A DNA stretch of 64,000 nt, taken from Penicillus capitatus (Eukaryota; Plantae; Chlorophyta). Under the pieces are notes generated by a model. The model did no database searches. It saw only the letters and a program-made list of their open reading frames with translations, and had not been told where the DNA came from. This document shows, piece by piece, positions 3,478 through 54,813 of this stretch. The translations under genes were made by a program, and so were the position numbers. The stretch covers positions 62,001 through 126,000 of the forward strand of contig OZ287707.1 of the NCBI GenBank assembly GCA_965649825.1, given 5' to 3'. Each line of letters begins with the position of its first letter. Position 1 is the stretch's first letter.

Positions 3478-6079
3478 TCAGTGTTTCTTGGCCTTCTTCT
3501 TGGTGCGATTTTCGAGTCGTCTTCTCCGAGCTTCTTCTTTTCTCAGCTTTTCGAGTCGCAAATTCTTGATGCGACGTCGACTGTCACCTTCAAGATCATC
3601 CCAGTCGAAGGAGAGTTCCTTATCCTCCTGAACAGACGCCCATCCTTCAAATTCCTGAATTCGAATGTCTGTCTTTCCATTCCTCAAGTAATTGGTGCAG
3701 AGGGATCTGCTCAGACGGAACAATATCACATAAAACCAAGAAACAGAACAAACCTCAGTACTGCCGGATCGGCTCTTTGTTTCTCAGGTGTCCCAACGAT
3801 CAGTCCATGCACTCGCAGTCCGAGCTTTTCCTTGGCTCCTGAGAGCTTCCGCATGATATCAGTTCCTGGTTGTCGCAGTTCCCCGTCTGACACGAGAAGA
3901 ATGTCAGAATTCGCCCATTTGGCATCGGTCAATCTACATGGACACGACAGAGCTTCACAACAATGACAACGACATGACTGCAAGAAAGACCGATCAAGGC
4001 ATCGCTTGACAGGCTCGTTGAAATCTGATCCTCCGTTGAAGACCTTTTCAAGGAACTCCAGAAGGTTGTTAACACTCTTCATATCCTGATTTAATTCGAG
4101 TTCCCTCACCTATGACGGGCACATTTCCATCGTGTGCCCTATCGCCAGGCATTCTGCAATGAAGGAACCTCTTGCGGACCGGAGAATGCAAAGACGTAGC
4201 ATCCACGATCTTGTTCTTTTGCTGCTCTCATGCACTCTAGTGTCAGCGCTTTGGCAACTATCTCCCTGGGGCCCTGCCGTGTATACCAATGACATCTATG
4301 ATTCGCGAGACTTATTAGATTGCCTGCATGGATCCAGATGTGTCGACACAGAGTAGAATGGGACCTCTGTCTGCCGTCGGGCGAATCTCTCTTCTCTCCG
4401 GGATGATGTTGGTTGGATACTCGCCCCATCCGTCACGCTCGTATGTCGACAACGCTTTTTCTGCCAGTTTTGAGTAAAAGAGTAACTTTGCTTGGCGTAT
4501 GTGACGTCCTCTGGCAATCAGAGCAGACTCGGCCGGAAGCAACCGAGAGATGTCGTCCGATCGTGTCAGACCTCGTGTCTCCTGTTGCTCGAGAACTGTA
4601 CGTAACAGTCCATCGCGTCCTTTTGGATCGAAGAATTGAATGGGAGCGCGCCTGAGAGGACCCCATCCGCCACCTCTTCCCAGGGAACGTACCAGATCAC
4701 GCAACTCCTGCACAACGACATCAGGAGAGTTTATTACTGTCAACATCGCCGAGAGAAACGTGCCTTGAGATTCTCGAGCTTTCTTCTGAGTTCGTCCATA
4801 TGTGTCCAGCCCTTGCGACTCCACATGTTCCCAGATAATTCGAACACTCCAGAACGGCCACCTCCCAGTAGAACTTCCAGTCCTTCGAAGGCCCTTCCTG
4901 CCTGTGAAGAGGAAAATTCTTCAGATCCATTTGAGGGAATCCAATGATGCCTTTTCTAATGTGCTGATCGGATTGGCCCATTGTTGATAGAGCTCTTTAA
5001 CAGCAGTGATCGCTGCTTTCTTTTCAATTGGCAATCCAGCCAGCGGATCCTTCTTAGGTTTCTTTGCCTTGGCCACCACTTTCTGAGCTTCTTCTGGAAG
5101 CTCTTGTGCCAATCTCGCTGCAGAGGTAATATCAGCATTCATCAGCCAGACCGGTCGGTAATTAGTGTGGATAGAATCACACCTGCTCGCTGCTCTTTTT
5201 CTTTCTGCTTTATTTCCTTCCAGGACATGTATGCATTTCCGTGAACATCTTTTTCTACTTCCGTTTCCTCCTCGGGGATCCTGTTTGTGCCGTTTAAACT
5301 TCCCATGGGGTTTCCACTATTGATCGCACTTACTCAAGGACAATCCTATAGTACTTGCAGACGCACTGGATGATGCTGAGAATAAGAGCTTCCAGCACTC
5401 CAGGATATTTCTTTGCAAAACGTGCAGCCCCCAACTTCGCCAAACCTCTGGGAATGAAACGCAACACCGTTGCATCTGATGATTAAGAAAGGTGGCAACA
5501 AGCAAATTCGAACACCTTTGAAGTGTTTCTCTTAGCGGTTCAGGTGGCCACCGAAGTTCTCCGACTGCCCTTTCTGCCAAAACAGATTCGTTCTCGTGGA
5601 TGAGCTGTTTCAATGTCTCGTCATCTGGCAGCAGTCCGCGCTCCAAAGATTTCTATACATTGATCTCCGCCCTCGTCAAAGTGTCAATGACCGTCGGCTA
5701 TACCCGCCAAGTGGATAATCCCAATGCACTTTCCTGAATGGCAGGACTCGAATCCCCATGCTCGTTCGACCTGAGATCGACACCGTTGAAAACCGAGCCA
5801 CCACGGAGATACTTGTTATTGCGACCGTATGTGAGCCAATCGAAGGATCCAAGGCAGATGGGACGTGTTGATTTCTCCAAGCTGCCCCAGTCCTTGAACC
5901 AATGCATAATGTCCTCCTTCTGTGATCCCTTTAGCCGTTTGCTGAACGACTGCCGCGTTATGGACACGCAGAAACGAACGCTGACGACATCTGTTTCTGG
6001 AGCAATGTCGGATCGAAACAGGTGTCCTTAATCCGACGCCCTTCAGAAGAGGGGATCGGAGACTCTGCACGTCGAACAT
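3478..6079 (-). CDS. viaA: ViaA-like von Willebrand A (MIDAS) protein with N-terminal targeting-like extension; alternative start 6121
   Basis: Spliced: GLTRSDDISRLLPAE..LLFYSKLAEKALSTY..GPILLCVDTSGSMQ|GPREIVAKAL..CYVFAFS..FNGGSDF..KWANSDILLVSDGE..LGLRVHGLIVG. This matches the ViaA architecture. Three GC-AG introns (4274-4323, 4708-4763, 4902-4950). Confidence 0.85.
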
Positions 6080-6159
6080 CAGAGACGTGAGATCGCGAGA
6101 TCGTGTCTCTGCATGTCCCATCGTCTTGGCATTGCGTTCCGCAGATCTTACCGCAGAGG
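6080..6159. promoter_or_regulatory. Putative bidirectional promoter and 5'UTRs shared by viaA-like and ravA-like genes
   Basis: Only 80 nt (38 nt with the 6121 start) between divergent ATGs. 7-bp inverted repeat CAGAGAC 6080-6086 / GTCTCTG 6105-6111 encloses GAGATCG x2. Confidence 0.5.
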
Positions 6160-7973
6160 ATGATGCACCGTGGAACCCTCACGGCTTCGAGCCGTGTCAT
6201 CTTCGCCTCTCAGCCACGCTACGTTGCTCACCGATGGATATCGCCAACTGGATTCGCGCGACGCATTGGGTCGATACACAGACGACCTGTTGAGCCATTT
6301 CCTGTCAGAGAGAGCTCAAGTGGCGACGTGATCTGCCAGGCAGTGAAATCGGCAGAAGCTGGAGAGCAACTGGATGAAGCAGCCATGCAGCTGATTTCAG
6401 AAATTAGCAGCTCTGCGGATACCTATGTCAAGGATCTCGCTCAACAACATCTGGATGCGACGAAACAAGAATCCACGTTGCTTCCCGAATCCACTGAACT
6501 TCGTAATAAAGTGATGAAGTCGATTCTCGATCTGCAGAACGGACTGCTCGAACGCGAAACGGAAGTTCGTTTGCTGCTATTGGCTGCATTGTGCGGAGAG
6601 CACCTGCTTCTGTTGGGACCCCCAGGTTTGCTTCTTACTTAAAGGCAGATCCGATGAATGCTCTGATTTGAAGGAACTGCCAAATCTGAGCTGTCGAGAA
6701 GACTGAGCTCTCTCTGTGGTGGGAAATACTTCGAACGCCTTCTGACGCGATTCTCAGTTCCCGAGGAACTCTTCGGACCTCTGTCCATGAAAGGTCTGTC
6801 AAAGGACATATATTTTCGCTGTTGACTGCATGTTATTCTTGAAAGGGTTGGAGAATGATCTGTACATTCGACAAATCGATGGGTATTTGCCAACAGCTGA
6901 GGTGGCCTTCATCGACGAAATCTTCAAAGCCAATTCAGCTATTCTCAATGCTCTTCTCACACTTTTGAATGAACGGTGAGATTGTGCGTTTATCACACAA
7001 AAGATTGATCGCCTTTGTCAGATTGTTTGATAATGGAAATGAGCGTCTACCTGTGCCTCTGCTTTGTCTTGTTGGCGCTTCTAATGAACTGCCAGAGAGT
7101 GAAGAATTGGATGCCCTTTACGATCGGTTCTTGATTCGACGACAAGTCTCGCAGGTTACAAGCGGCCAGTTGCCCAAACTGGCACGCTTGGCTGCTGGCA
7201 GAGAGGGGTTTGCAGATGCCTCGTTATCTTCCGATTCAGGTGACGCTTTTGATTTGGATGATGTCCAAGATCTCTCCCTGGAAGACTTCAAATCTGTCGC
7301 TTCACTCGCCTACCAGGCTGTCGATGTACCTGAGACTGTGATCGACATCCTGACATCCCTCAGAGATTATCTGCAGGACAAATGCGAACCTCCAATTTAT
7401 GTATCGGACCGAAGATTCATGAAAGCAGTACAAACACTTCAAGTGGCTGCCCATTCCGACGGACGTGTGGAAGTGAATGAGTATGACTGTCTCCTGCTGG
7501 AACATGTGTTTGGCAATCGACCTGACGATGCACAGAAAGTGAAGAGCTATGTGATCGAGACCATCGCCTCGGATCCTGGATTGCAGCAATCGATGCTAGT
7601 CTTTCTGGGACTCTTCGGGAGAGCCTGCAGAATTCTCGAATCGGCATCCTACGATGAACTTCCTGAGGTCCGAGGGGAATTGGCGTCTCTGGTTGACTTG
7701 TTGAAATCCAGGCATCAAGCATTGACATCTAATCTGGAAGGCCAGTACCCAGAACTCCGAAGAACTGTATGGCAGAGCGAAGCAACAGTCCAAGCAGCCA
7801 TCCAGGCATTGACGCCTCAGATGACAGAGAACAAGAAGAAGGTGATCGACTTGCTGAAGGAGATTGCGACAGTGAACTGCTGTCTGGAGAAGAACGTATC
7901 GAGTGGCGTGCTGGAAAAGCTCTTGCCCAAACGCTACAAACAGTACAAGAAGGGCATTTCAGGCGAAACGTAG
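6160..7973 (+). CDS. ravA: RavA-like MoxR-family AAA+ ATPase with N-terminal targeting-like extension, 4 exons
   Basis: [28 protein letters not shown]|TAKS (Walker A), [48 protein letters not shown] (Walker B), [15 protein letters not shown]. Three GT-AG introns of about 46-51 nt. Confidence 0.9.
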
Positions 7974-8031
7974 CATATCGAGAACACGTTATGTTTCCAA
8001 CACGGTTTTGTTCAATATTTTAATCGGTCGT

Positions 8032-34929: not shown

Positions 34930-37900
34930 TCAGGGAATCTCTCCGCTGGGCTGTGTCGCTGGTGTTTGCCCCGAGAAGTTCGATGGGGGTGGTGGATTGT
35001 TACTACTTCCGTTAGGAGGTCTCCTGTTATTTCTTCCCTGTCTGGGCATGGGTCCTGCGGCACCTGAAAACTTGGACGGATTCCATACACGTTGATTCGG
35101 TGGCACCAATTGACTATAATAATTGCCCCACATCATCGCAATTCTCTGCTGGTCTGGCATTCCAGGCGGCATTGGATGTGGTCTCCACATCGGTTCTTGC
35201 ATTCCACCCATGAAAGGAGGTGGCATACCAGGAACAAACATTGGATACGGACTCGGCATTCCTGGTGGGATAAATCCATTCACCATGGCATTGGCTTGAG
35301 GCGTTCCAGGTCTGGGTGCTGGGATCTCTGAGTGCCATACCCCTGTTCCTGGAAAAGACGGCCAAGGTGTCACGACATTTGACGGAGGTACAAAAGGTGG
35401 GCGTGGGCCAGGAGGTGGAGGATTTCCGCCATAATCTGGTGGTACTCCTTCTCCAGGTCCAGCTGTTGGTTTAGGTGTTTGCGGTTGAACAGATCCGTTA
35501 GGCGGGGGCGGGACAACAGGAGGAGGAATTTCTCCTGGTTGGGATGATGACCTGGCATCATACTCTACTGGGGGCGGCGCTGCATAAGATGGTGTTGGAT
35601 GCTGTTCTGCTCCAGAAGATCCATCGACCGTGTTCACCACCGGCTTGAATGCTTTGGCCTTTGGATTTAACTGAAAACGACGACCACTTCTTCCTACTGC
35701 TTCCATCTGTCCTCCATCTTCACGGACGGCGCCTTCTGATACTGGAGAGAAAGAGCCGTGAGGCTGGCTACCATATGGCGCTGGTGGTGGCATCGATGAT
35801 ATTCCGTCTGGTGTTGGCCCTCTGGGAGGACCCGTTGGTGGACCAAAGTTGCCATATTGTCCCCCATGAGGGTGGCCAACGGGCGGCGGCATTTCTGGGT
35901 AGACACCATGTCCAGCAGGCGGCATCATTCCTATTGACCCATGCGATGTCATCTCATGTGGTGGAAGGTAGATCACAGGGGGATGTGGAACGGTCATAGG
36001 CGACAATAAGTGCTCTTCTGAGGGCAGTCCTCTGTTAGCGGTTCCTGGATGCAATTCATTGCGTCGTGGATTGGAGATCAGTTTTCCGGGATAATTGCCT
36101 TGGCGTGGGGACTGTACGACTGGATCGTTTGTGGGATCCACAAAACTGCTTTGCGATTTCGTCTGAGCATGTCCACTACTGCTGCTGTGCGGAGTCTTCT
36201 GTTTTGCTGGGGCCTGTGGTTTTGGCGAACTACTCTTCAGATTGGCTGTGAGCTTATCTCTGAATGAGATTCCTGGCACGACTGTCGATGTCGGTTTCTT
36301 GGGCTCCGGTTTCCGGATCGTGGGAGAGGCAACACCGCCAATCTCTTCAAGGGATGGTTCCTTAATTCCTTCTTCGAGTGATTCTTGCTGCGGTGGAGTA
36401 ATGACTTCTGCTTTCACTGGGATTGATTCGTTCGTTGGCGGTCCCCAAACGGGATCTCGATAGTACTGAGGAGCGGCAGGCTTGTCCACGGAGACGTCCT
36501 CCGTTATCATTGCAAATCCAGTGGGACGTTCTCCGACAGTCGATGGCTCAGCCTGGTGACTCAAGGACGAATATCCGCCAGTACTGAACAGTGATTCCTT
36601 GTCTTTTCCATAGACATAGTCGGGATGTGAGGGACTGGAGTCTTGCGGAGGCAATGTGGTCAGGGACGGTTCGTAAACAAAAGACTTCTGAGCACTGACT
36701 CGTTTTTCAGGATAAGACGGTTGGCCGTCATATACAGCAGCGCTGCTCATTTGATGCGGTCGGACGCATTCCGTAGATGATGTGGCATAATTGTGTGCAA
36801 CGTTCTGAAAAGCTGGCCTCGGTTCTCTTGGACTCTCAGGTTCTTTTTTGTCAGGCGTTTTCCGAACAGTTTCTATCACAGCTTGCTTTGAGGGCAGCGG
36901 TGTGGATGTGGAAGTGCCTTTAACGGCATCGACCCAAGACAACGGCTTCGCCTTGGGCACAGATTCAACCTTGACAGTTGGAGGCGGTGGTGATGGCGGC
37001 GGCAGTGGCGATGATCCTTCTTCATCTTCATGAACCTAGAAACAAACAAACGAATGCCTATGATGTCCTTTCCCGCTGCAAAGGCAGACGTACGCCAGAA
37101 TCGTCAATCGCTGCTGCAGGGAGATTCCGTGGTGCGGATTCGATCTCTGCCGCAATTCTTTCAGCTTCTTCTTTGGTATATCTTGACTTCTGTACATCTA
37201 GTTTGCTCGTATAGTCATTCATATCGAAGGTTGACTGCACTCCGGCATTTGCATGGGCCTTAAACTGACACCAGTCACTCGTATCACCATCTAAAACAAT
37301 ATCTTCATCCGCAGCCTCTCCTCCATTCCAGGCAACCAATGGACGTTCCACCATCCGCCTATCACACAAAACGAGGCGACAGTCCAGTTAGCAGACAGAG
37401 TTCCCAAGCACATACTCTTTCCCTTCGGCGACTGCAGCTGTAGCTGCCCGTTTTCTATCTCCAGTGAATCCTGCCATATCGTCGTCATCATCCACTGGCA
37501 GATTTTCGTATTCCGCCTTTTCACCGACCTCTTCCTGTTCATCGTATTTATCATCACTTCTGCACACCATTTTCATTTCCCTCGGCAAATGAGACAGGAG
37601 GATACATACACGTTCCGGTTATGGACCCTGTCCATATCTCCATTCTGCGACTTGCTCGGCGACGTTGGCGATAAAGGAATACCGACTGCCTTCATTTGCA
37701 CGAATTCGGTGGAAGGTATGACCAATGTCTCGTGCAACGGTGATTCTGTTGTCGCCGTATCGCACACTTTTCTCGCGTTCTTCAGCGTGATGTGGATGTT
37801 CTTGCTTCCCAGAACCGGTCCGTAAAGTGTCCCTTCAAATTCGACGCCGCTTTTTACCTACCCATCCGTCTTTGACTTGGAAGGACCCGTCGACGGAACG

Positions 37901-43086: not shown

Positions 43087-44192
43087 ATGCTTGCTCAGGC
43101 TCGACGCCGTCTACAAACTCGGCTACTAAATCGTAAGATAAAATCCATCCTTTGTCTCGTCTTTCTTTATCCGATCCTCTACGGATGCAGTCGCACGACA
43201 CTTGATTAAGATGCAGTATTAAAGTGTTTCGTGTCCAGATCTGCGGATCGATATTGAGTCTGTTCAACTGCAGGCCGTGAGGACAACGACTGTTCTCTGT
43301 GTCAGGAAAAAGAATGATGTTGAGCTGTCAGGTTATATGGGGTATGCTGCAATCTTCATGCTCGTAGGTGGTGTTGGTGGCGGATGGTCAAGTGACAGTG
43401 GGCAATCATGTTCAGAAGCCGAATGTGCACAAGCTCAGACGTATTAGCAACAAAGTCATTGCAGGATTTGCTGGTCCGATCATAGATCCAGTCAGAAGTT
43501 GTGAGATTCGCTATTCTCTTCTTAGGTTCAACGGCAGATGCTTTCTCGCTTCTTGACAATTTAGAAATCAAAATAGAACAGTATCCAGGTAAGGATCGTC
43601 GGAATGGCTCTCAATGCATCCAAGGAATGCAGATCAGATTGTAAGGGCGGCAGTAGAATTGGCCAAGCTCTGGAGAACAGACAAGTTCTTGCGAAGGCTT
43701 GATGTACGAATGGGTGTGGGGTCTGCTTTTGTCATCGACACTGTGTTCTAGGCTGCCATGATTGTTGCAGATGCAGATACCGTGTTGGAGATCACAGGCC
43801 AAGGCGACGTCCTAGAACCGCATGATGGAATCCTAGGTGCGTCTTATGCGCATCTGTCGATGTTACTCCCGACAGACGTATCCTTTTCTAGCCATCGGTT
43901 CTGGGAGCAGCTTTGCCGTCGCCGCTGCGCGTGCTCTTATCGACCTCCCTGACTTGGCATCAAAACAAATAGGTGCATTCGATGGTAGATGATCTGCTTT
44001 CCTTAGCTCTCTGCTTGCGTGCTGCATTCAGCTGAGAAAGCAATGAAGATCGCAGCGGATGCTGACATCTACACGAATCACAATTTCATGTGGGAAATAT
44101 TGGACATTGAGCAAATCAAGAAAGACGAAGAAAAGAAGGAGAAGCAACTCGAAGAGGAATCCAAATCATCGCTTCCCAAATCAACCTCATGA
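43087..44192 (+). CDS. hslV: HslV (ClpQ) Ntn-hydrolase protease subunit with probable mitochondrial presequence
   Basis: Spliced TTTVLCVRK..VADGQVTVG..VIAGFAG|STADAFSL..AAVELAKLWRTDKFLRRLD|AAMIVAD..ITGQGDVLEP..AIGSG..AARAL..YTNHN. Joining of the presequence exons is unresolved. Confidence 0.9.
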
Positions 44193-44303
44193 TGACAGAT
44201 TGCCAGCCCATCGAGGACATATCTGTTACTCTTATTCCAACAGGAGCCTGTTCATGGATCAATGAACCAGTCCACGCTCTTCTATGGGAGTGTCTTGGCG
44301 ATG

Positions 44304-47227
44304 TTATCGAATCGCCTTGAGTCTTTCTTTCATCCCATGCAGCGTCGAGAAATCTGTCGCTTCCCATCCTAACAGTTCTTCCTGGGCATTTAGTTCCTCG
44401 GCATCTTCGATGTGTTTCCGGACAGTCTCTGTCATCTTCAACAGCTGCAACGGCAATCGGAAAGGGACGATTTGGAGAGGGACGAAAGATGTACCCTCTG
44501 TCTGAATCTCTCTCTTCTCTTCGTTGCCCCTTCGAGCTCCATTTCGTTCACAGACGTTGTCATCTCGGTCACAGTTAACATTAGTGCAGTGATCTTCTCT
44601 CTGAGCGGTTCCTCACAACCTCTCATGAAGGCCAATGTACGGACAGTTGTTTCCTTCAGAGCGGACAGCAGCTTGGAAGGCCAATGGCTTGCCTGCAGGA
44701 CACTATCCAGAATCCACTCAGAGATTGGACACCTGCAGCGTCACATCATGAATACCGACTGCATCGTGTACAGATGACCAACAAACCTGTGCTTTACAAG
44801 GAAATCGAATTTTTCTTTGATCGAGTCCACGATCTCTTTCTGCGATTTCGTAAAAGCATCCGATTCTGCGATGTCGTCTCTCATTTGAATGGCTTCTCTG
44901 AGAGATACGATATCCTTTTCCAGTGTTTTTGACCTTGCTTCGAACTGCTCGATCAATTCTGTGCTGTCCTGTTCCATCTTTGTCTTTATCTTTTCGAGAA
45001 TGATCTGCTCAATTTCACGCGCTTTGCCGATCAACTGATTCTTAATGTCCTTCGTCGAAATCATGAATAATCCTGAATGTTATGGATCTTTTCCCGCAGG
45101 TAAGTAGGCAGAGCAAAACCTGCAGGGATTTCATCCTGACAGATGTACTGTAGTTCTTGAGATCGCTTTCTTAGCATCTGTATCCTGAATTCCATCACCA
45201 CTGTGGATGCATTCGCAGCCTCGCGTGCTTCGGCAAGAAGAACCGGATCAAGAAGATCATCTGTGTATTCATCGAACAGTCGACACATCTGAATCGAGGC
45301 ACTGAAATCCTTCTCCAGGATCTGAAGTGTTTTCTAGAATAAATCAATCGCTTTATGAACATAGGAGATATCTTTAATGCGCCTTTTTGGTATCAGAAAC
45401 AACCCAATCTTTCTCCTTCTCTTGATCGCTGCGCGCTGAACCCTTCGCCTCGTCGATGATAGCCGAACTGAGACTTGGAATATCTGAAATCGTATTGGCA
45501 CATCTGTCCAACAGATCCACGAGCGCCTCAGCGATATCGTTCAGAGTTGGACTGGTCACGACTCTTCTTCCTTAGATCAAGAGACTGTCAGGTCCAGTCT
45601 ATGCAAACAGCGATCTCTGTTCGTTACCTTCACAGACTACGCGAAGGACGAAAACTGGTTTCTGTAACGGATAGGAGTAGACATCGGGATCCACTGTGGC
45701 AGTCGATGATGCAAATGGCTCGAGCAGGTCTGGCAAACATGGACTGTCTGGTCGGTGACTTCCATATTGCCTTACCGCTAAGACACGACACAGATTCGTG
45801 CAGTAGAGACTTGAGCTGAATACGTTGCAATGCATCCAGACAATGCAGATAGGCGTTTTTCTTAGCCACAGCACCTTCCTCTTCTTCTCCCATTAAACAA
45901 TCCATCTAACGACAAGTAGGCAGCTCTCTCTACCCATAGCGCCTAGGATCATACTGCGCGAGGAATCCATGATGTCAAGAGATGCCCTTTTCTCAACTCC
46001 AAGTTCTGGCCCTGAAGATAAAAAGCGGGACGCTTCTCCAACCGATCATGGAGAGAGAAGCCACTTGAATCTGTTTGAATGCAGAGAGTTCGAGTGGCAT
46101 CAAAGCATCCAGATCTTCAGGCGGCTGAAGCAGACTTCGATTCTGAAAACTGCTCATCCAAATGCTTCTCAACATCATAACGCTTCTGCGATATCTGTAG
46201 AGGCTCTTCTCTGCGATTCTCTTGTTATCCGAATAGCTTTGCTTCCATTGTTCAGGAATGCAGATGAACAGTGGAGCTTTGTACAATATCTTCTGTGCTT
46301 CCGACAGAGAAATAAATGGAACAAGTGCCTTAAGCTTCAGTCTTTGCGTAACGGATGAGCAATGTAAGGCGTAATCAAGTATCGACCGTCTGATCGCTAA
46401 TTGATACAGTTCATGCACTTCCTCTAAACTGAATCAAACAAACAGAGTATTGGAGATGGAGGGTATTGAAGCAACACGATTCAATACCAAACGCTTGATA
46501 GATCGTCCGACTCAAGGAATGGACGTTTCAGCCGATCGATGACTTGGTCGGGCATCTGCGCCAGTTCAGCCGTCGAAATGCCTTCTTTAAGATATCGAAG
46601 AAAGAGCATCTGGGCTTCATGGACTTCGGATGCACACGTGTGCTTCATTTCTAGAGCTTTTAGGAATCTGGATTTCAGGATTCGTTGGAACTGTGTGAAG
46701 AAAGTTTCGTTTTCGATGGAGTGCGGTCCTATCGTCTTACGCAACACAGTTTCCAATTCAGCCATCGATTCTAGCGCGACTCGTTCTAGTTGGCCAACGG
46801 CAGACGACCGTTTTCGCTCTGGAGCCAAAAGCGTTCTGTCGACATTCAGCGGTGCGATACAGAGATTGCCGTTCTCCTCTGAAGCTTCGCCGCCGAACGT
46901 TGCCTTGTTCACTCTGTTTAGATGTTGACTCTTTCGTTTCTGCTGAGTTGTATGCGACGCAGACGGCCGTTTCACATAAAGACAGCCAATTCTGCTGGAC
47001 ACTGACAGACACTGTGGGTTCGCCGGATTCTCCGCCAGTGAACTTCTGGTAAACAGCGGACGTGTATTCAAAACCGGACTCAGATCACTGTCTCCCATCT
47101 GCGGTAGGTGCACACGTCTTCGTCTATCCTCGATCGTTTGAGGACTGACACTTACGACGACATGACTTGCTGTGTTCCAAAGAAAACATGGTTCTTCAAA
47201 GACAAGGCCCTTGTAGAATGGATCCAT
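44304..47227 (-). CDS. Inner-arm dynein heavy-chain N-terminal tail only; no motor domain (truncated gene or possible pseudogene)
   Basis: LAIRRSILDYAL, IPEQW, LRSIW..F, LTSWIPRA, IQLKSLLHES, SHWPSKL, AEELNAQEELLGWEATDF, then TAA at 44304-44306. HslV converges at 44192. Confidence 0.7.
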
Positions 47228-47370
47228 CGATGGCTCGCTTGGATTGCGGCGCCTTTGCGCAGAGAATATCGCAGGCGACAGTTACAGACAGACGATCGTT
47301 TTTTGCGCTCGAGAAAGACGGCGATGCGGCACGACAAACACCTGTCATCGTTAATTTCAAAGCAGAGTTT

Positions 47371-48248
47371 TCACTTTCTTTTCCCCAGCTTCTGAAAAAA
47401 CTCAATGCCTTTGGAGATTGGACTCCCTGCTGCAGTAGCATTGTAAAAGGCCGTCTCCAACTCGAACTGTGTCGGCCGCGTCGCCTGTTGACCAATCTGA
47501 TTAAACTGCTGGCCATCTTCCAATAAAATGAACCATTTTGCATCATAGCCTCTCTCCTTTTGCCAATGGAACAGGGCGCCATTCTTCTCTGCATAGACAG
47601 CACAAACGCGCATAAGGAGCCTGAATCAGATATAGATATCTGTGTACTTTGAATGAAGACCTTCACAGCCAATGGCATGAAGCAATAGACCGTGTTGAAT
47701 GCCCGAAGGAAAGATGCCTTCTCCTGTTTGAAGTCCTCGCTGAATTCTGGATTGAAGAGAAGCACCGTTTCGCCACGCCATGAATCGTCTAGGAGCTCAA
47801 ACAAGGCATCTTCCTGCTGCTCTGTTGGACTGAAGATTAAGAGACGCGATCCCAATGTCGTCTTCAATGCCTGATCCATGTGCACAGCTTTGTTCTTCAT
47901 GAACCGATCTCTGGCAGCATCCACGAGATCCTTTCTCGAATAGACAACGCTGGTGCCAGTTATGCCATCAGCTTGGAGAGCATCGACCAATTGCTCTGTC
48001 AAAAAGAGTGAGTTTTCTACACTTGTGTCTACAATAGGTATCTCAGCACAGATTCTGCGCAGGCTCTTCATGCGTCTTGACCTCGATCCCTTCTCCCCGA
48101 ACAGATTGACACGGACAGAACGGCATGCCTGAGAAACACAGGCCTCGAACGAGCGAGGGATATCGGATGCCGATGCGTCGGCTGCCGCGACCGTCGTGAC
48201 GCGGCGTGACGCGATCTGAGGTGATCGCATCGTCAAGAAACACGGCAT
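47371..48248 (-). CDS. DUF1995 (LPA3-related) putative plastid protein; alternative start 48230
   Basis: Transit-like N-terminus, PRSFEACVSQACRSV, VLLFNPEF, FNTVYCFMPL..GALF..W..RPT..LETAFYNA. Confidence 0.65.
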
Positions 48249-48841: not shown

Positions 48842-50161
48842 CTAATCAGCACCATTATAAACGGCAAATGCGCGCTCCAAGACCAATTTATCATATCCTC
48901 CCATGCATTTCCCTTCGGCGCATTGGGTCAACGTCGGGTCATTTTTGTAAGTGCGGCAACGGCAGATGAAATCTCTAGGTGTCAATCCATGCTCTTCCTT
49001 GGCGTTGGCATCGGCCCCATTCAACAGAAGAATCTGCATGATCACGAGATCACAGACCGCAATAAATGCCACAAGCATACCTGAGTCACACCCACAGCTC
49101 CATAAGCTGTCGCTTCATGAAGTGGCGTCTCCTCTTCCTCATCGGCAGCATTGACATCTGCTTTGGCTTTAATGAGAAGATTTGCGATTTCATACCTAGA
49201 AACGGCACCATTAAAAGTTTGCTCTTACCAAAGATGATGTTACTGATCAAAAGCAGGTGCATAGTGCAGAGGTGTCTCTTTCATCTCTGTGGCGGCATTT
49301 GGATTCGCCTTGAATTTGAGCAGCACTTCAACACATGCCACAAACTCGCCCATGCCGGGAATGGTGGATTTGCTTCGTGCTTCCGACGTCAAAGATGTTT
49401 CCGTCGAAGACTAACATCCATCCCCAGTCACACATCATAAAAGCGAGACAAAACAGACCTCCTTGACAATGGTATCGTAGCCGGATTCAAGAGCGTCCTT
49501 TGTTTCAAACTGATATCTAATACAAAAGCCCATGCAAAAAATCGACAAGTCTGGCTGATGGTCATTACTGGTTCGCGTAGGATGCAAAATGAAGCGGTGC
49601 AAATTTGCGATTGTTTGTGAGATTGGGGTCGGCATCATCGGCCAACAGCATACTCGCGACGAGCACGTCGCCATGGTTCGCAGCATAGTGCAAGGCTGTC
49701 GTGCCATTTGAGGTTTGTGCGTTCACGTCGACGCCAAAGTCCATCAACAACAGCAATGCTTCCAAGTTACCAATGGCCGCAGCCAGGTGAATGGGGCGAT
49801 ATGCAGAAGGCTCAGTCTTATCCTCCGGGTCTGCTCCATCCTTTATTGCCCGGCGCATTCCTTCGAGGTCTCCCTCATTTAATGCGATCCAAAACTCCAA
49901 CTGCCGCGCTGTACAATTAGAGCGACGCGGATAGAAAAGTGCGACGCACTTGGGCAACGGGCGGGTCGTCTAACAAACGTCTGGTAGACGTATGTGCGTT
50001 GACTTCGGCACCTGCAAACGGTTCCCTGTCAGCTTCGGTGTTATAGAAGACCCGCGCGGCGGGCGTGGCGTCCTACGTGGGTGTGGGAGGTAGGGGACGA
50101 CACGTGCCGAAACTGACACGAGTACTACGGCCAGAAGGAAAACAGCTGACTTGGCAAGCAT
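48842..50161 (-). CDS. Ankyrin-repeat protein with N-terminal signal-peptide-like segment
   Basis: MLAKSAVFLLAVVLVSVSA; ankyrin repeats RPIHLAA, GTTALHYAA, APLHFAS, ETPLHYA, ETPLHEA, GLTP; Cys-rich ends. Confidence 0.85.
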
Positions 50162-53742: not shown

Positions 53743-54616
53743 TTAGGCAGATGGGTCGTATTTTGTGGCGAACACAGCCGTGAGGCCATTCACGTTGACT
53801 GGGTCAGCAATATGGTCGGCCCAGTTCTCAACTGGTCCCTTTCCAGTGACAATGGCTTGGACGAAGTATCCAAACATGGAGAACATGGCAAGTCTTCCGT
53901 TCTTGATCTCCTTGATCTTCAACTCGGCGAAGGTGTCGGGATCGTCAGCCAGACCGAGAGGGTCGAAAGCTTCGCCGGGGTAGAGGGAGTCGAGTCCCTC
54001 GCCGAGAGGACCACCATTCACACGGTACGCCTCAGCCAGTCCCATCAGGACAACCTACGCCATGTACGCGTTAGCACGTGCCGATCGCGCAGTTCGTCGT
54101 TTCAGACCTGGCAGCCGAGAATGGCGAGAATGGATTGGGCATGAACGAGCGAAGGGTTGCCGAGATAGTCGAGACCTCCCTTGGCGAAAATCTGCGAACC
54201 GGCTTTGAACCAGACGGATTCGCCAAACTGAACACCGCCGTATCTGCTGAGAAGCTCGGGAGTCAAGCAACCGAGTGTTCCCAACATAGCCCAGCGGGCA
54301 TGGATGACTTCGAGTTCGCGGTACTTGGCGAACGTCTGAGGATCGGCGGAGAGACCGGCCGTGTCCCAGCCGTAGTCGCCAGGGAATTCACCCGTGAGGT
54401 AAGGGGGGACAGTGCCCTCGGAGAAAGGTCCGAGCCACAGAACGCGGTTCGGTCCGTAGAACTCGGCAGCGGCGCGAGTCACTTGGCGTGTGCCCTGCGA
54501 ACACGACAGGCACTCGTCGACGATGCCATAAAACGAAACCCTACCCTGCCGGCAGCGGGGACGGCGCTGCGAACGCTGGTGCCAGCGAAAGCTTTGGTCA
54601 TGGTGGAGGAGGCCAT
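53743..54616 (-). CDS. LHCBM: LHCII-type chlorophyll a/b-binding protein, 3 exons
   Basis: [53 protein letters not shown]; transit peptide [12 protein letters not shown]; strong C/G third-position bias. Confidence 0.95.
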
Positions 54617-54813
54617 TGGAGACTGGTGAGAAGAGTCGAGCAAGGAGCGAAGTGGCAAAGGCGGAAAACGGAGGAAAGCGCAAAACGAAGACTGGTGACG
54701 AAAGGTGCGATCATGGCTTATATTCGATTCTGAGACGAGATCAATCGATACACGTCACCAGATTCACGTCTGGTGAACGTACAAACGAGATCGCCAACCT
54801 CCATGTTGCTTCA

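Follow-up and report, generated by a model that had tools for sequence, protein, structure and literature searches.

A predicted tail-only gene for a single-headed inner-arm dynein heavy chain in a green alga

Introduction

What is a dynein heavy-chain gene that stops where its motor should begin, and why would a genome keep one? Dynein heavy chains are usually encoded by single genes of at least 12 kb. The exceptions known so far are the split outer-arm dyneins of Giardia and its relatives and the cytoplasmic dynein of Basidiomycota (PMC5100056). The question is raised by a 64,000-nucleotide (nt) stretch of DNA from the green alga Penicillus capitatus (contig OZ287707.1 of assembly GCA_965649825.1, positions 62,001 to 126,000 of the forward strand), which is called the window throughout and to whose positions all coordinates of the tail gene refer. 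It is compact, intron-rich eukaryotic DNA with a G+C content of ~49%, and its minus strand carries, at 44304..47227, a gene that, judged from its sequence, encodes only the tail (~800 amino acids, aa) of an IAD-3-type heavy chain, that is, one of the DNAH3/7/12 group of single-headed inner-arm dyneins. To the exceptions named above the locus appears to add a new one, a green-algal single-headed inner-arm dynein tail that is separated from its motor and has been kept by selection across two diverged genomes.

Structure of the tail gene

The gene runs through spliced open frames from an ATG at 47227 to a TAA stop codon at 44306-44304, and its coding sequence (CDS) of 2403 nt, or 800 codons plus TAA, is distributed over 11 exons that are separated by 10 introns of 46-59 nt. 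Exons 1 to 6 occupy positions 47227-47156, 47098-46488, 46428-46065, 46011-45955, 45905-45776 and 45729-45628, and exons 7 to 11 positions 45570-45383, 45333-45120, 45072-44787, 44732-44495 and 44444-44304, all on the minus strand. The product of 800 aa, with a mass of about 90 kDa, ends in ...LHGMKERLKAIR*. An earlier reading of this DNA, made from the letters alone and referred to here as the first-pass annotation, had placed the end of the feature at 44116; the CDS ends instead at 44304, and positions 44116-44303 are 3' untranslated region or spacer together with the antisense of the last hslV exon.

Nine of the 10 introns have GT-AG boundaries. Intron 7 (45334..45382, minus strand, phase 0) is of the GC-AG type and reads AAG|GCGCAT...TCTAG, and when it is spliced in this way the alignment with the Chlamydomonas heavy chain 8glv_Kg, described below, passes the junction without a gap.

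Three landmarks are spread along the product. Close to the N-terminus, at approximately 46953..47095 (minus strand), lies the family motif ..SPVLNTRPLFTR..SSRIG, which is common to Kg-type inner-arm tails, constitutes domain 1 of the phmmer match and is also seen in the proteins P0001, P0002, P0003, P0009 and P0010. Exon 3 (46065..46428, minus strand) is under the strongest constraint in the gene and gives the best exon-level match to orthologs (E 1.6e-6 by tblastn against the ortholog P0003). Near the C-terminus, at 44349..44381 (minus strand), the sequence EELLGWEATDF is, according to both phmmer and a multiple alignment, the counterpart of the LFGW..TK[FY] block that stands just before the linker in other heavy chains.

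Homology to inner-arm dynein tails

In a phmmer search against the sequences of the Protein Data Bank (PDB), the tail product gives a single strong collinear match, chain Kg of entry 8glv, an axonemal heavy chain of Chlamydomonas with 4151 aa (E 1.1e-21). Query residues 224-804 are aligned with residues 284-866 of this chain, and the N-terminal motif adds a weak match of residues 26-65 to 73-112. Other dyneins in the same search match only within the last ~200 residues, and 8glv_Kg is the sole Chlamydomonas inner-arm chain to match across the entire tail. The corresponding Chlamydomonas tail segment was rebuilt from the PDB alignment, and protein searches with it brought up tails of the Kg type in Haematococcus, in Chlamydomonas sp. 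UWO241 and in several metagenomes. With the best of these, the metagenomic ortholog P0003, the window protein can be aligned by BLASTP over 657 residues (183-797 on 155-784; E 4e-33). The first-pass annotation had described dynein tail exons in order, with open frames and a terminal LKAIR followed by a stop, and the matches to 8glv_Kg and P0003 bear this out.

The family can be placed through the motor that follows the P0003 tail on its contig, L002. The best score of this motor is with 8glv_Kg, followed by human DNAH7, DNAH12 and DNAH3, which assigns the family to the IAD-3 group of single-headed inner arms. In the multiple alignment, the ELNAQEELLGWEATDF motif of the window protein stands opposite the LFGW..TK[FY] block of the orthologs, and its final ...KERLKAIR stands opposite their ...KLEPFL or ...RLEPYR, after which the orthologs go on as LEP[FY]..LW. 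The tail is thus collinear with 8glv_Kg of Chlamydomonas reinhardtii and with the orthologs on L002 and L017 from the PVLN..LFTR..RIG motif to the LFGW..T.[FY] block; unlike them, it is followed by no linker, AAA ring, stalk or C-terminal domain, and its identity to these canonical orthologs is only 20-23%, whereas they share 34-41% among themselves.

Neither the crude nor the refined protein matched a dynein family in Pfam scans, DHC_N1 included, and a word-indexed protein search with the tail gave zero matches. Pfam DHC_N1 does not cover this class of tails, whose homology rests on the pairwise and phmmer matches.

Absence of the motor from the locus

All four pieces of the full heavy chain of L002 were compared with the window by tblastn, and they matched the tail exons and no motor sequence; nor does any of the six frames of the window contain an AAA P-loop motif. 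The earlier claim that no motor lies at the locus, between the DUF1995 gene and a convergent hslV, agrees with these searches. In the window, in the 10 kb beyond either of its ends and in the loci of a syntenic relative, no motor sequence was found, and neither were the six AAA+ modules, the stalk with its microtubule-binding domain or the C-terminal domain that a full heavy chain carries in the same gene.

The DHC_N2 linker that would follow the tail in a full heavy chain is likewise missing. The 111-nt spacer 3' of the stop codon holds no remnant of it, the best score over three frames being equal to the mean of shuffled sequences (p ~0.5). One out-of-frame stretch in this region, RFDNIAKTLP.KSVDWFIDP, can be set beside the linker sequence PFLNLW...DWMNGP, and by the same shuffle test it is a chance resemblance. 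A further arrangement, in which hslV would be nested in a long dynein intron, was rejected: beyond hslV the minus strand carries a short-chain dehydrogenase and unrelated genes, and no motor is present within 44 kb.

In both organisms with a readable context, L002 and L017, a Kg-type tail continues directly into DHC_N2, the AAA modules and the C-terminal domain. These orthologs are single genes of ~12 kb in which tail and motor are joined, while the window gene is tail only, and the joined gene is therefore taken as the ancestral state.

Conservation of the tail gene in other genomes

One explanation to be considered is an assembly artefact, a chimeric join of tail exons with hslV. In its favor is that the DNA comes from a metagenome assembly, and the first-pass annotation had itself raised a misassembly at the breakpoint. 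Two samples bear on this. The first, to which exact matches of the window's proteins lead, holds a near-identical copy of the locus, the European Nucleotide Archive (ENA) record ctg340247_39x_l, a 295-kb contig of the metagenome assembly ERZ25074695 (L004/L006), called the record copy below. Over the 20.7 kb that correspond to window positions 36481-57222 it differs from the window at ~90 places (~0.4%), including a 6-nt indel near 50048, and the differences are patchy, with one between 36.5 and 45.9 kb and the majority between 48.6 and 56.4 kb. Window and record copy would thus come from one population, the window as another haplotype, strain or assembly of it.

The second sample, ERZ26696514, contains a 1.06-Mb contig with an ALG2 protein 93% identical to that of the window, and its syntenic contigs L008 and L010 were reached through an invariant exon of a light-harvesting (LHCII) gene. 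Each aligns with the window region along the whole 20 kb at 85% DNA identity; between the two contigs themselves the identity is 99.2%. L008 shows the same order of DUF1995, tail gene and hslV and the same 11 exons, with every donor and acceptor site in place, among them the GC donor of intron 7, which reads GCGTGC there. Its product of 799 aa is 83% identical to that of the window and ends in ...ERLNAIR, with the stop at the same codon, changed from TAA to TGA. The junction of tail gene and hslV is accordingly present in four sequences (the window, the record copy and, at 85% identity, L008 and L010), by which a misassembly is refuted. The GC donor of intron 7, retained at a synonymous divergence (dS) of 0.46, indicates that the alga really uses such donors, as the first-pass annotation had supposed from other places in this DNA.

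L010 has the structure of L008 except for a 1-nt deletion (CC to C) in exon 6. It lies at ~18330 of the contig, equivalent to ~45718 of the window, where GAGCCGTTC has become GAG-CGTTC, and would shift the frame of the tail gene. Among ~10 indel events that separate L008 from L010 it is the sole one in an exon of the tail gene, and it may represent a true null allele or an error in the consensus. In the sample ERZ26696514, two LHCII loci are each found on a pair of contigs of megabase or nearly megabase scale (L008/L010 and L007/L009) with a coverage of ~156-178x, and in ERZ25074695 there is one contig per LHCII locus (39x). The pairing in ERZ26696514 suggests a diploid genome or two co-abundant strains.

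Purifying selection

Could the gene be a truncated remnant without function, on its way to becoming a pseudogene? The missing motor and the frameshift in L010 are what one would expect of such a remnant, and a recent truncation was among the options of the first-pass annotation. Substitutions between the record copy and L008, counted by the Nei-Gojobori method with bootstrap confidence intervals (CI), argue otherwise. The tail gene has a dS of 0.456 and a nonsynonymous divergence (dN) of 0.091, which gives a ratio (omega) of 0.20, with a bootstrap 95% CI of 0.15-0.26 and no replicate above 0.31; in a sliding window the ratio is lowest in the middle of the protein, at ~0.08-0.10 for codons 300-500. 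Neighboring genes that are clearly functional are constrained to the same degree, with omega values of 0.19 for DUF3082, 0.20 for an exon of DRC2, 0.16 for an ankyrin-repeat (Ank) gene and 0.19 for the last exon of hslV.

The pattern of length changes points in the same direction. The exons differ between the genomes by two indels, of 3 and 6 nt, both of which keep the frame, and they are 86% identical, as against 74% for the introns, which have 16 gap columns in 517 nt. In the window, the record copy and L008, no stop codon interrupts the ~800 codons and all 20 splice sites are intact. Of the marks of a pseudogene, namely disrupted frames, lost splice sites and a dN/dS near 1, only the 1-nt deletion of L010 was found. 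Since the truncated form is common to genomes at a dS of 0.46 and evolves at an omega of 0.20, it is older than the divergence of these genomes, and purifying selection has acted on it ever since. With this the idea of a recent truncation falls away, as does the neutral evolution against which the first-pass annotation had proposed a dN/dS check. A functionless remnant is largely refuted and is given very little weight here; the tail-only gene is a real protein-coding gene that is kept by selection, and neither an assembly error nor a dead relic.

The end of the coding sequence

With the TAA stop codon at 44304..44306 (minus strand), the frame closes three residues short of the site where the linker's conserved 'LW' would stand. 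The first-pass annotation had proposed that the last codons hide a splice donor, AAG|GCGATT (44316/44315), at which the transcript would be joined in trans, as in Giardia dyneins, to a motor transcript from another locus. Several observations speak for such a live GC donor: GC-AG splicing occurs in this very gene, at intron 7, the GC after codon 796 is kept in L008, the junction would lie just before the P[FY]xxLW motif, and the dynein genes of Giardia provide a precedent. The details of the comparison with L008 do not fit it. The base before the supposed donor has changed from G to T, which turns Lys into Asn, and the subsequent 'AIR-stop' has undergone silent changes only (ATT to ATC, TAA to TGA), as is usual in translated sequence; a conserved donor followed by non-coding sequence, the signature of trans-splicing, is not what is seen. 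In addition, the donor hexamers of the gene are too degenerate for GCGATT to be recognized as a signal, and green algae are not known to us to join coding exons by spliceosomal trans-splicing. Trans-splicing is accordingly disfavored and must be considered very improbable.

An alternative C-terminal exon was also tried, in which a GC-AG intron would lead into the open frame at 44116-44367, from which the coordinate 44116 of the first-pass annotation derives. It was rejected on account of indels of 4 nt and 1 nt in L008. Because these indels break the frame in the relative, both readthrough of the stop and splicing into the 44116-44367 frame are excluded.

The silent changes in the last three codons and the stop instead support separate translation. 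The tail would thus be made as a polypeptide of its own, which ends at a conserved stop on the boundary between tail and linker.

Split gene or stand-alone tail

If the tail is a protein in its own right, does it still belong to a motor? Our preferred reading, held tentatively and at somewhat less than even confidence, is that a dynein heavy-chain gene has undergone fission and that its N-terminal half is what lies here, with the motor half elsewhere in the genome. In such a split, the half with the linker and the AAA motor would be encoded at another locus and translated separately, and the two polypeptides would join non-covalently, as in DHC1 of Agaricomycota and the N-terminal part of DHC4 in Giardia. 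The tail would continue to bind the inner-arm light chains and to dock on the doublet microtubule, and its short C-terminal LLGWEATDF...KERL stretch would pack against the first helix of the linker of the separate motor.

The locus offers what a split gene predicts on this side of the break, an N-terminal gene with its own stop at or before the boundary of the motor, and this stop is conserved in L008. The break falls within the conserved LFGW...P[FY]xxLW block, a site at which two halves could fit against each other. There are also precedents. In Agaricomycota, DHC1 is split before its motor domain, and its parts are separately transcribed and translated, in Giardia the N-terminal part of DHC4 is translated separately, and in Ustilago maydis, according to the account that Kollmar gives of Straube (2001), the cytoplasmic dynein is split into Dyn1 and Dyn2 (Kollmar, 2016; PMC5100056). 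The likeness to Agaricomycota and Ustilago lies in a separate gene for the N-terminal part of a dynein, which ends at or before the motor boundary, and in halves that are thought to be translated separately; theirs, however, is a fungal cytoplasmic dynein with a known gene for the motor half, and here we have a green-algal axonemal inner-arm chain for which no motor half was found. Giardia and Spironucleus resemble the alga in having axonemal heavy chains in pieces (DHC3 trans-spliced, the N-terminal part of DHC4 separate) and stand-alone genes for N-terminal parts, but these are outer-arm dyneins of diplomonads, and their trans-splicing signals have no support in the window.

Four points weigh against a split. 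The partner motor half is pure inference, as none was seen in a search that covered the window, flanks of ~10 kb and the loci of the relative. Single-headed inner arms have few accessory chains that would be able to bridge two polypeptides. The low identity of the tail to the canonical orthologs hints at changed constraints, which would fit a stand-alone role better, and the deletion in L010 means, if it is real, that at least one haplotype or strain can lose the gene.

The last two points lead to the other reading that has to be taken seriously, a 'headless' tail whose motor has been lost, with no partner in the genome, and which has been kept for docking in the axoneme together with actin and p28 or with centrin. 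We regard it as a possible explanation, less probable than a split gene, and all other explanations taken together as unlikely. A headless tail would hold an inner-arm site in the 96-nm repeat as a structural placeholder, regulate such a site or compete with a full-length paralog. Whatever speaks for a selected and separately translated tail applies to it equally; the divergence of the sequence suggests an altered function, and the frameshifted copy in L010 suggests that the gene is dispensable. Motor-less tails can still assemble at the normal site of the motor, as is reported for engineered tail fragments of the Chlamydomonas I1 dynein heavy chains, which assemble into axonemes without motors. 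Headless myosin isoforms, such as the myosin rod protein and headless Myo10, are alternative transcripts of intact genes. The comparison has its limit in that the myosins and the I1 tails are transcripts or laboratory constructs of an intact gene, while here we are dealing with a separate and conserved one. To our knowledge, no natural stand-alone dynein tail gene under selection has been described. The N-terminal-only dynein genes found in nature and described so far are all parts of split genes (Kollmar, 2016; PMC5100056), which counts against a headless tail, as does the retention of the LFGW-type block that adjoins the linker.

The two readings differ in what they would mean. In the case of a split gene, a dynein that has very few accessory chains can work with its tail and motor as separate polypeptides, and the break marks a natural point of complementation at the neck between tail and linker. 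In the case of a headless tail, a dynein tail can serve axonemes as a building block without motor function, which bears on how inner-arm docking sites are specified, and the alga would provide the first dynein tail gene that stands alone. In either case the locus amounts to a defined natural construct that is testable in Chlamydomonas.

Distant relatives of the tail

Exon 3 was also used as a HMMER query against 1.8 billion representative proteins, with matches accepted up to an E of 0.001. Six proteins were found. One is the exon of the syntenic relative, with 89% identity, and three are exon-sized fragments with 35-46% identity from marine and other metagenomes (P0131-P0134, the relative's exon included); of the remaining two, P0136 is a weaker, canonical-like tail fragment and P0135 a repeat protein that is probably spurious. 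Scans of the metagenomes of the Joint Genome Institute (JGI) with the tail protein and with the exon-3 alignment gave no match.

Another distant relative, of the same divergent clade of tails, is on the 6.1-kb contig L016 (Logan SRR2835676), which is 37% identical in exon 3 and collinear with residues 33-704 and beyond. At 5802-6101 its frame remains open beyond the counterpart of TDF for 54 codons or more, up to the end of the contig, and this extension has a few linker-like positions (P, F, F, L) that do not reach statistical significance.

Neighboring genes

On the 3' side, the tail gene is faced by the convergent hslV (mature part, 43283..44192, plus strand, seven exons), whose spliced product matches the NCBIfam HslV equivalog with an E of 2e-69 and whose intron 1 has a weak GTTGAG donor. 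The DUF1995 gene, assigned through PF09353 on the called product, lies upstream at 47371..48248 (minus strand). The spacers are very short, with 111 nt between the convergent stops (44193..44303) and 143 nt (47228-47370) between the stop of DUF1995 and the ATG of the tail gene. The 3' spacer holds no conserved reading frame and has indels of 1, 4 and 1 nt relative to L008; judged by eye from the alignment, its conservation between the two genomes is about that of exons.

The names that the first-pass annotation had given to DUF1995, hslV, ARL6 and DRC2 all hold. DRC2 matches its Chlamydomonas counterpart with an E of 5e-57, compared with 1e-25 to 1e-27 for animal DRC2, and the best match of ARL6 is Chlamydomonas ARL6. 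Since both genes are kept, the cell probably builds motile flagella. The nearest named sequences of the ALG2 protein are those of chlorophytes, at only 50-54% identity. Together with the presence of LHCII and DUF1995 genes, these matches mark the organism as a green alga, which is as fine as a placement by protein matches goes, LHCII giving no discrimination.

The LHCII gene at 53743-54683 (minus strand) has a last exon whose 100-aa product recurs unchanged in two or more paralogous loci of each genome and in both samples (L005, L007, L009), and which proved a useful anchor for looking up synteny. A MoxR-like AAA+ ATPase (Pfam bpMoxR and AAA_lid_8), of a family that is unusual on a eukaryotic nuclear contig, is encoded at ~3700-8000 of the window (2507-4317 of L011). 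Just left of the window, at 10514-13963 of L011, a run of open reading frames with faint matches of the beta-helix, Chlam_PMP and NosD types precedes an H+-pyrophosphatase gene. Finally, at 34930-37369 (minus strand), a proline-rich open frame of 676 aa lies beside an exon with an LsmAD domain, and the two together have the appearance of an ataxin-2-like gene.

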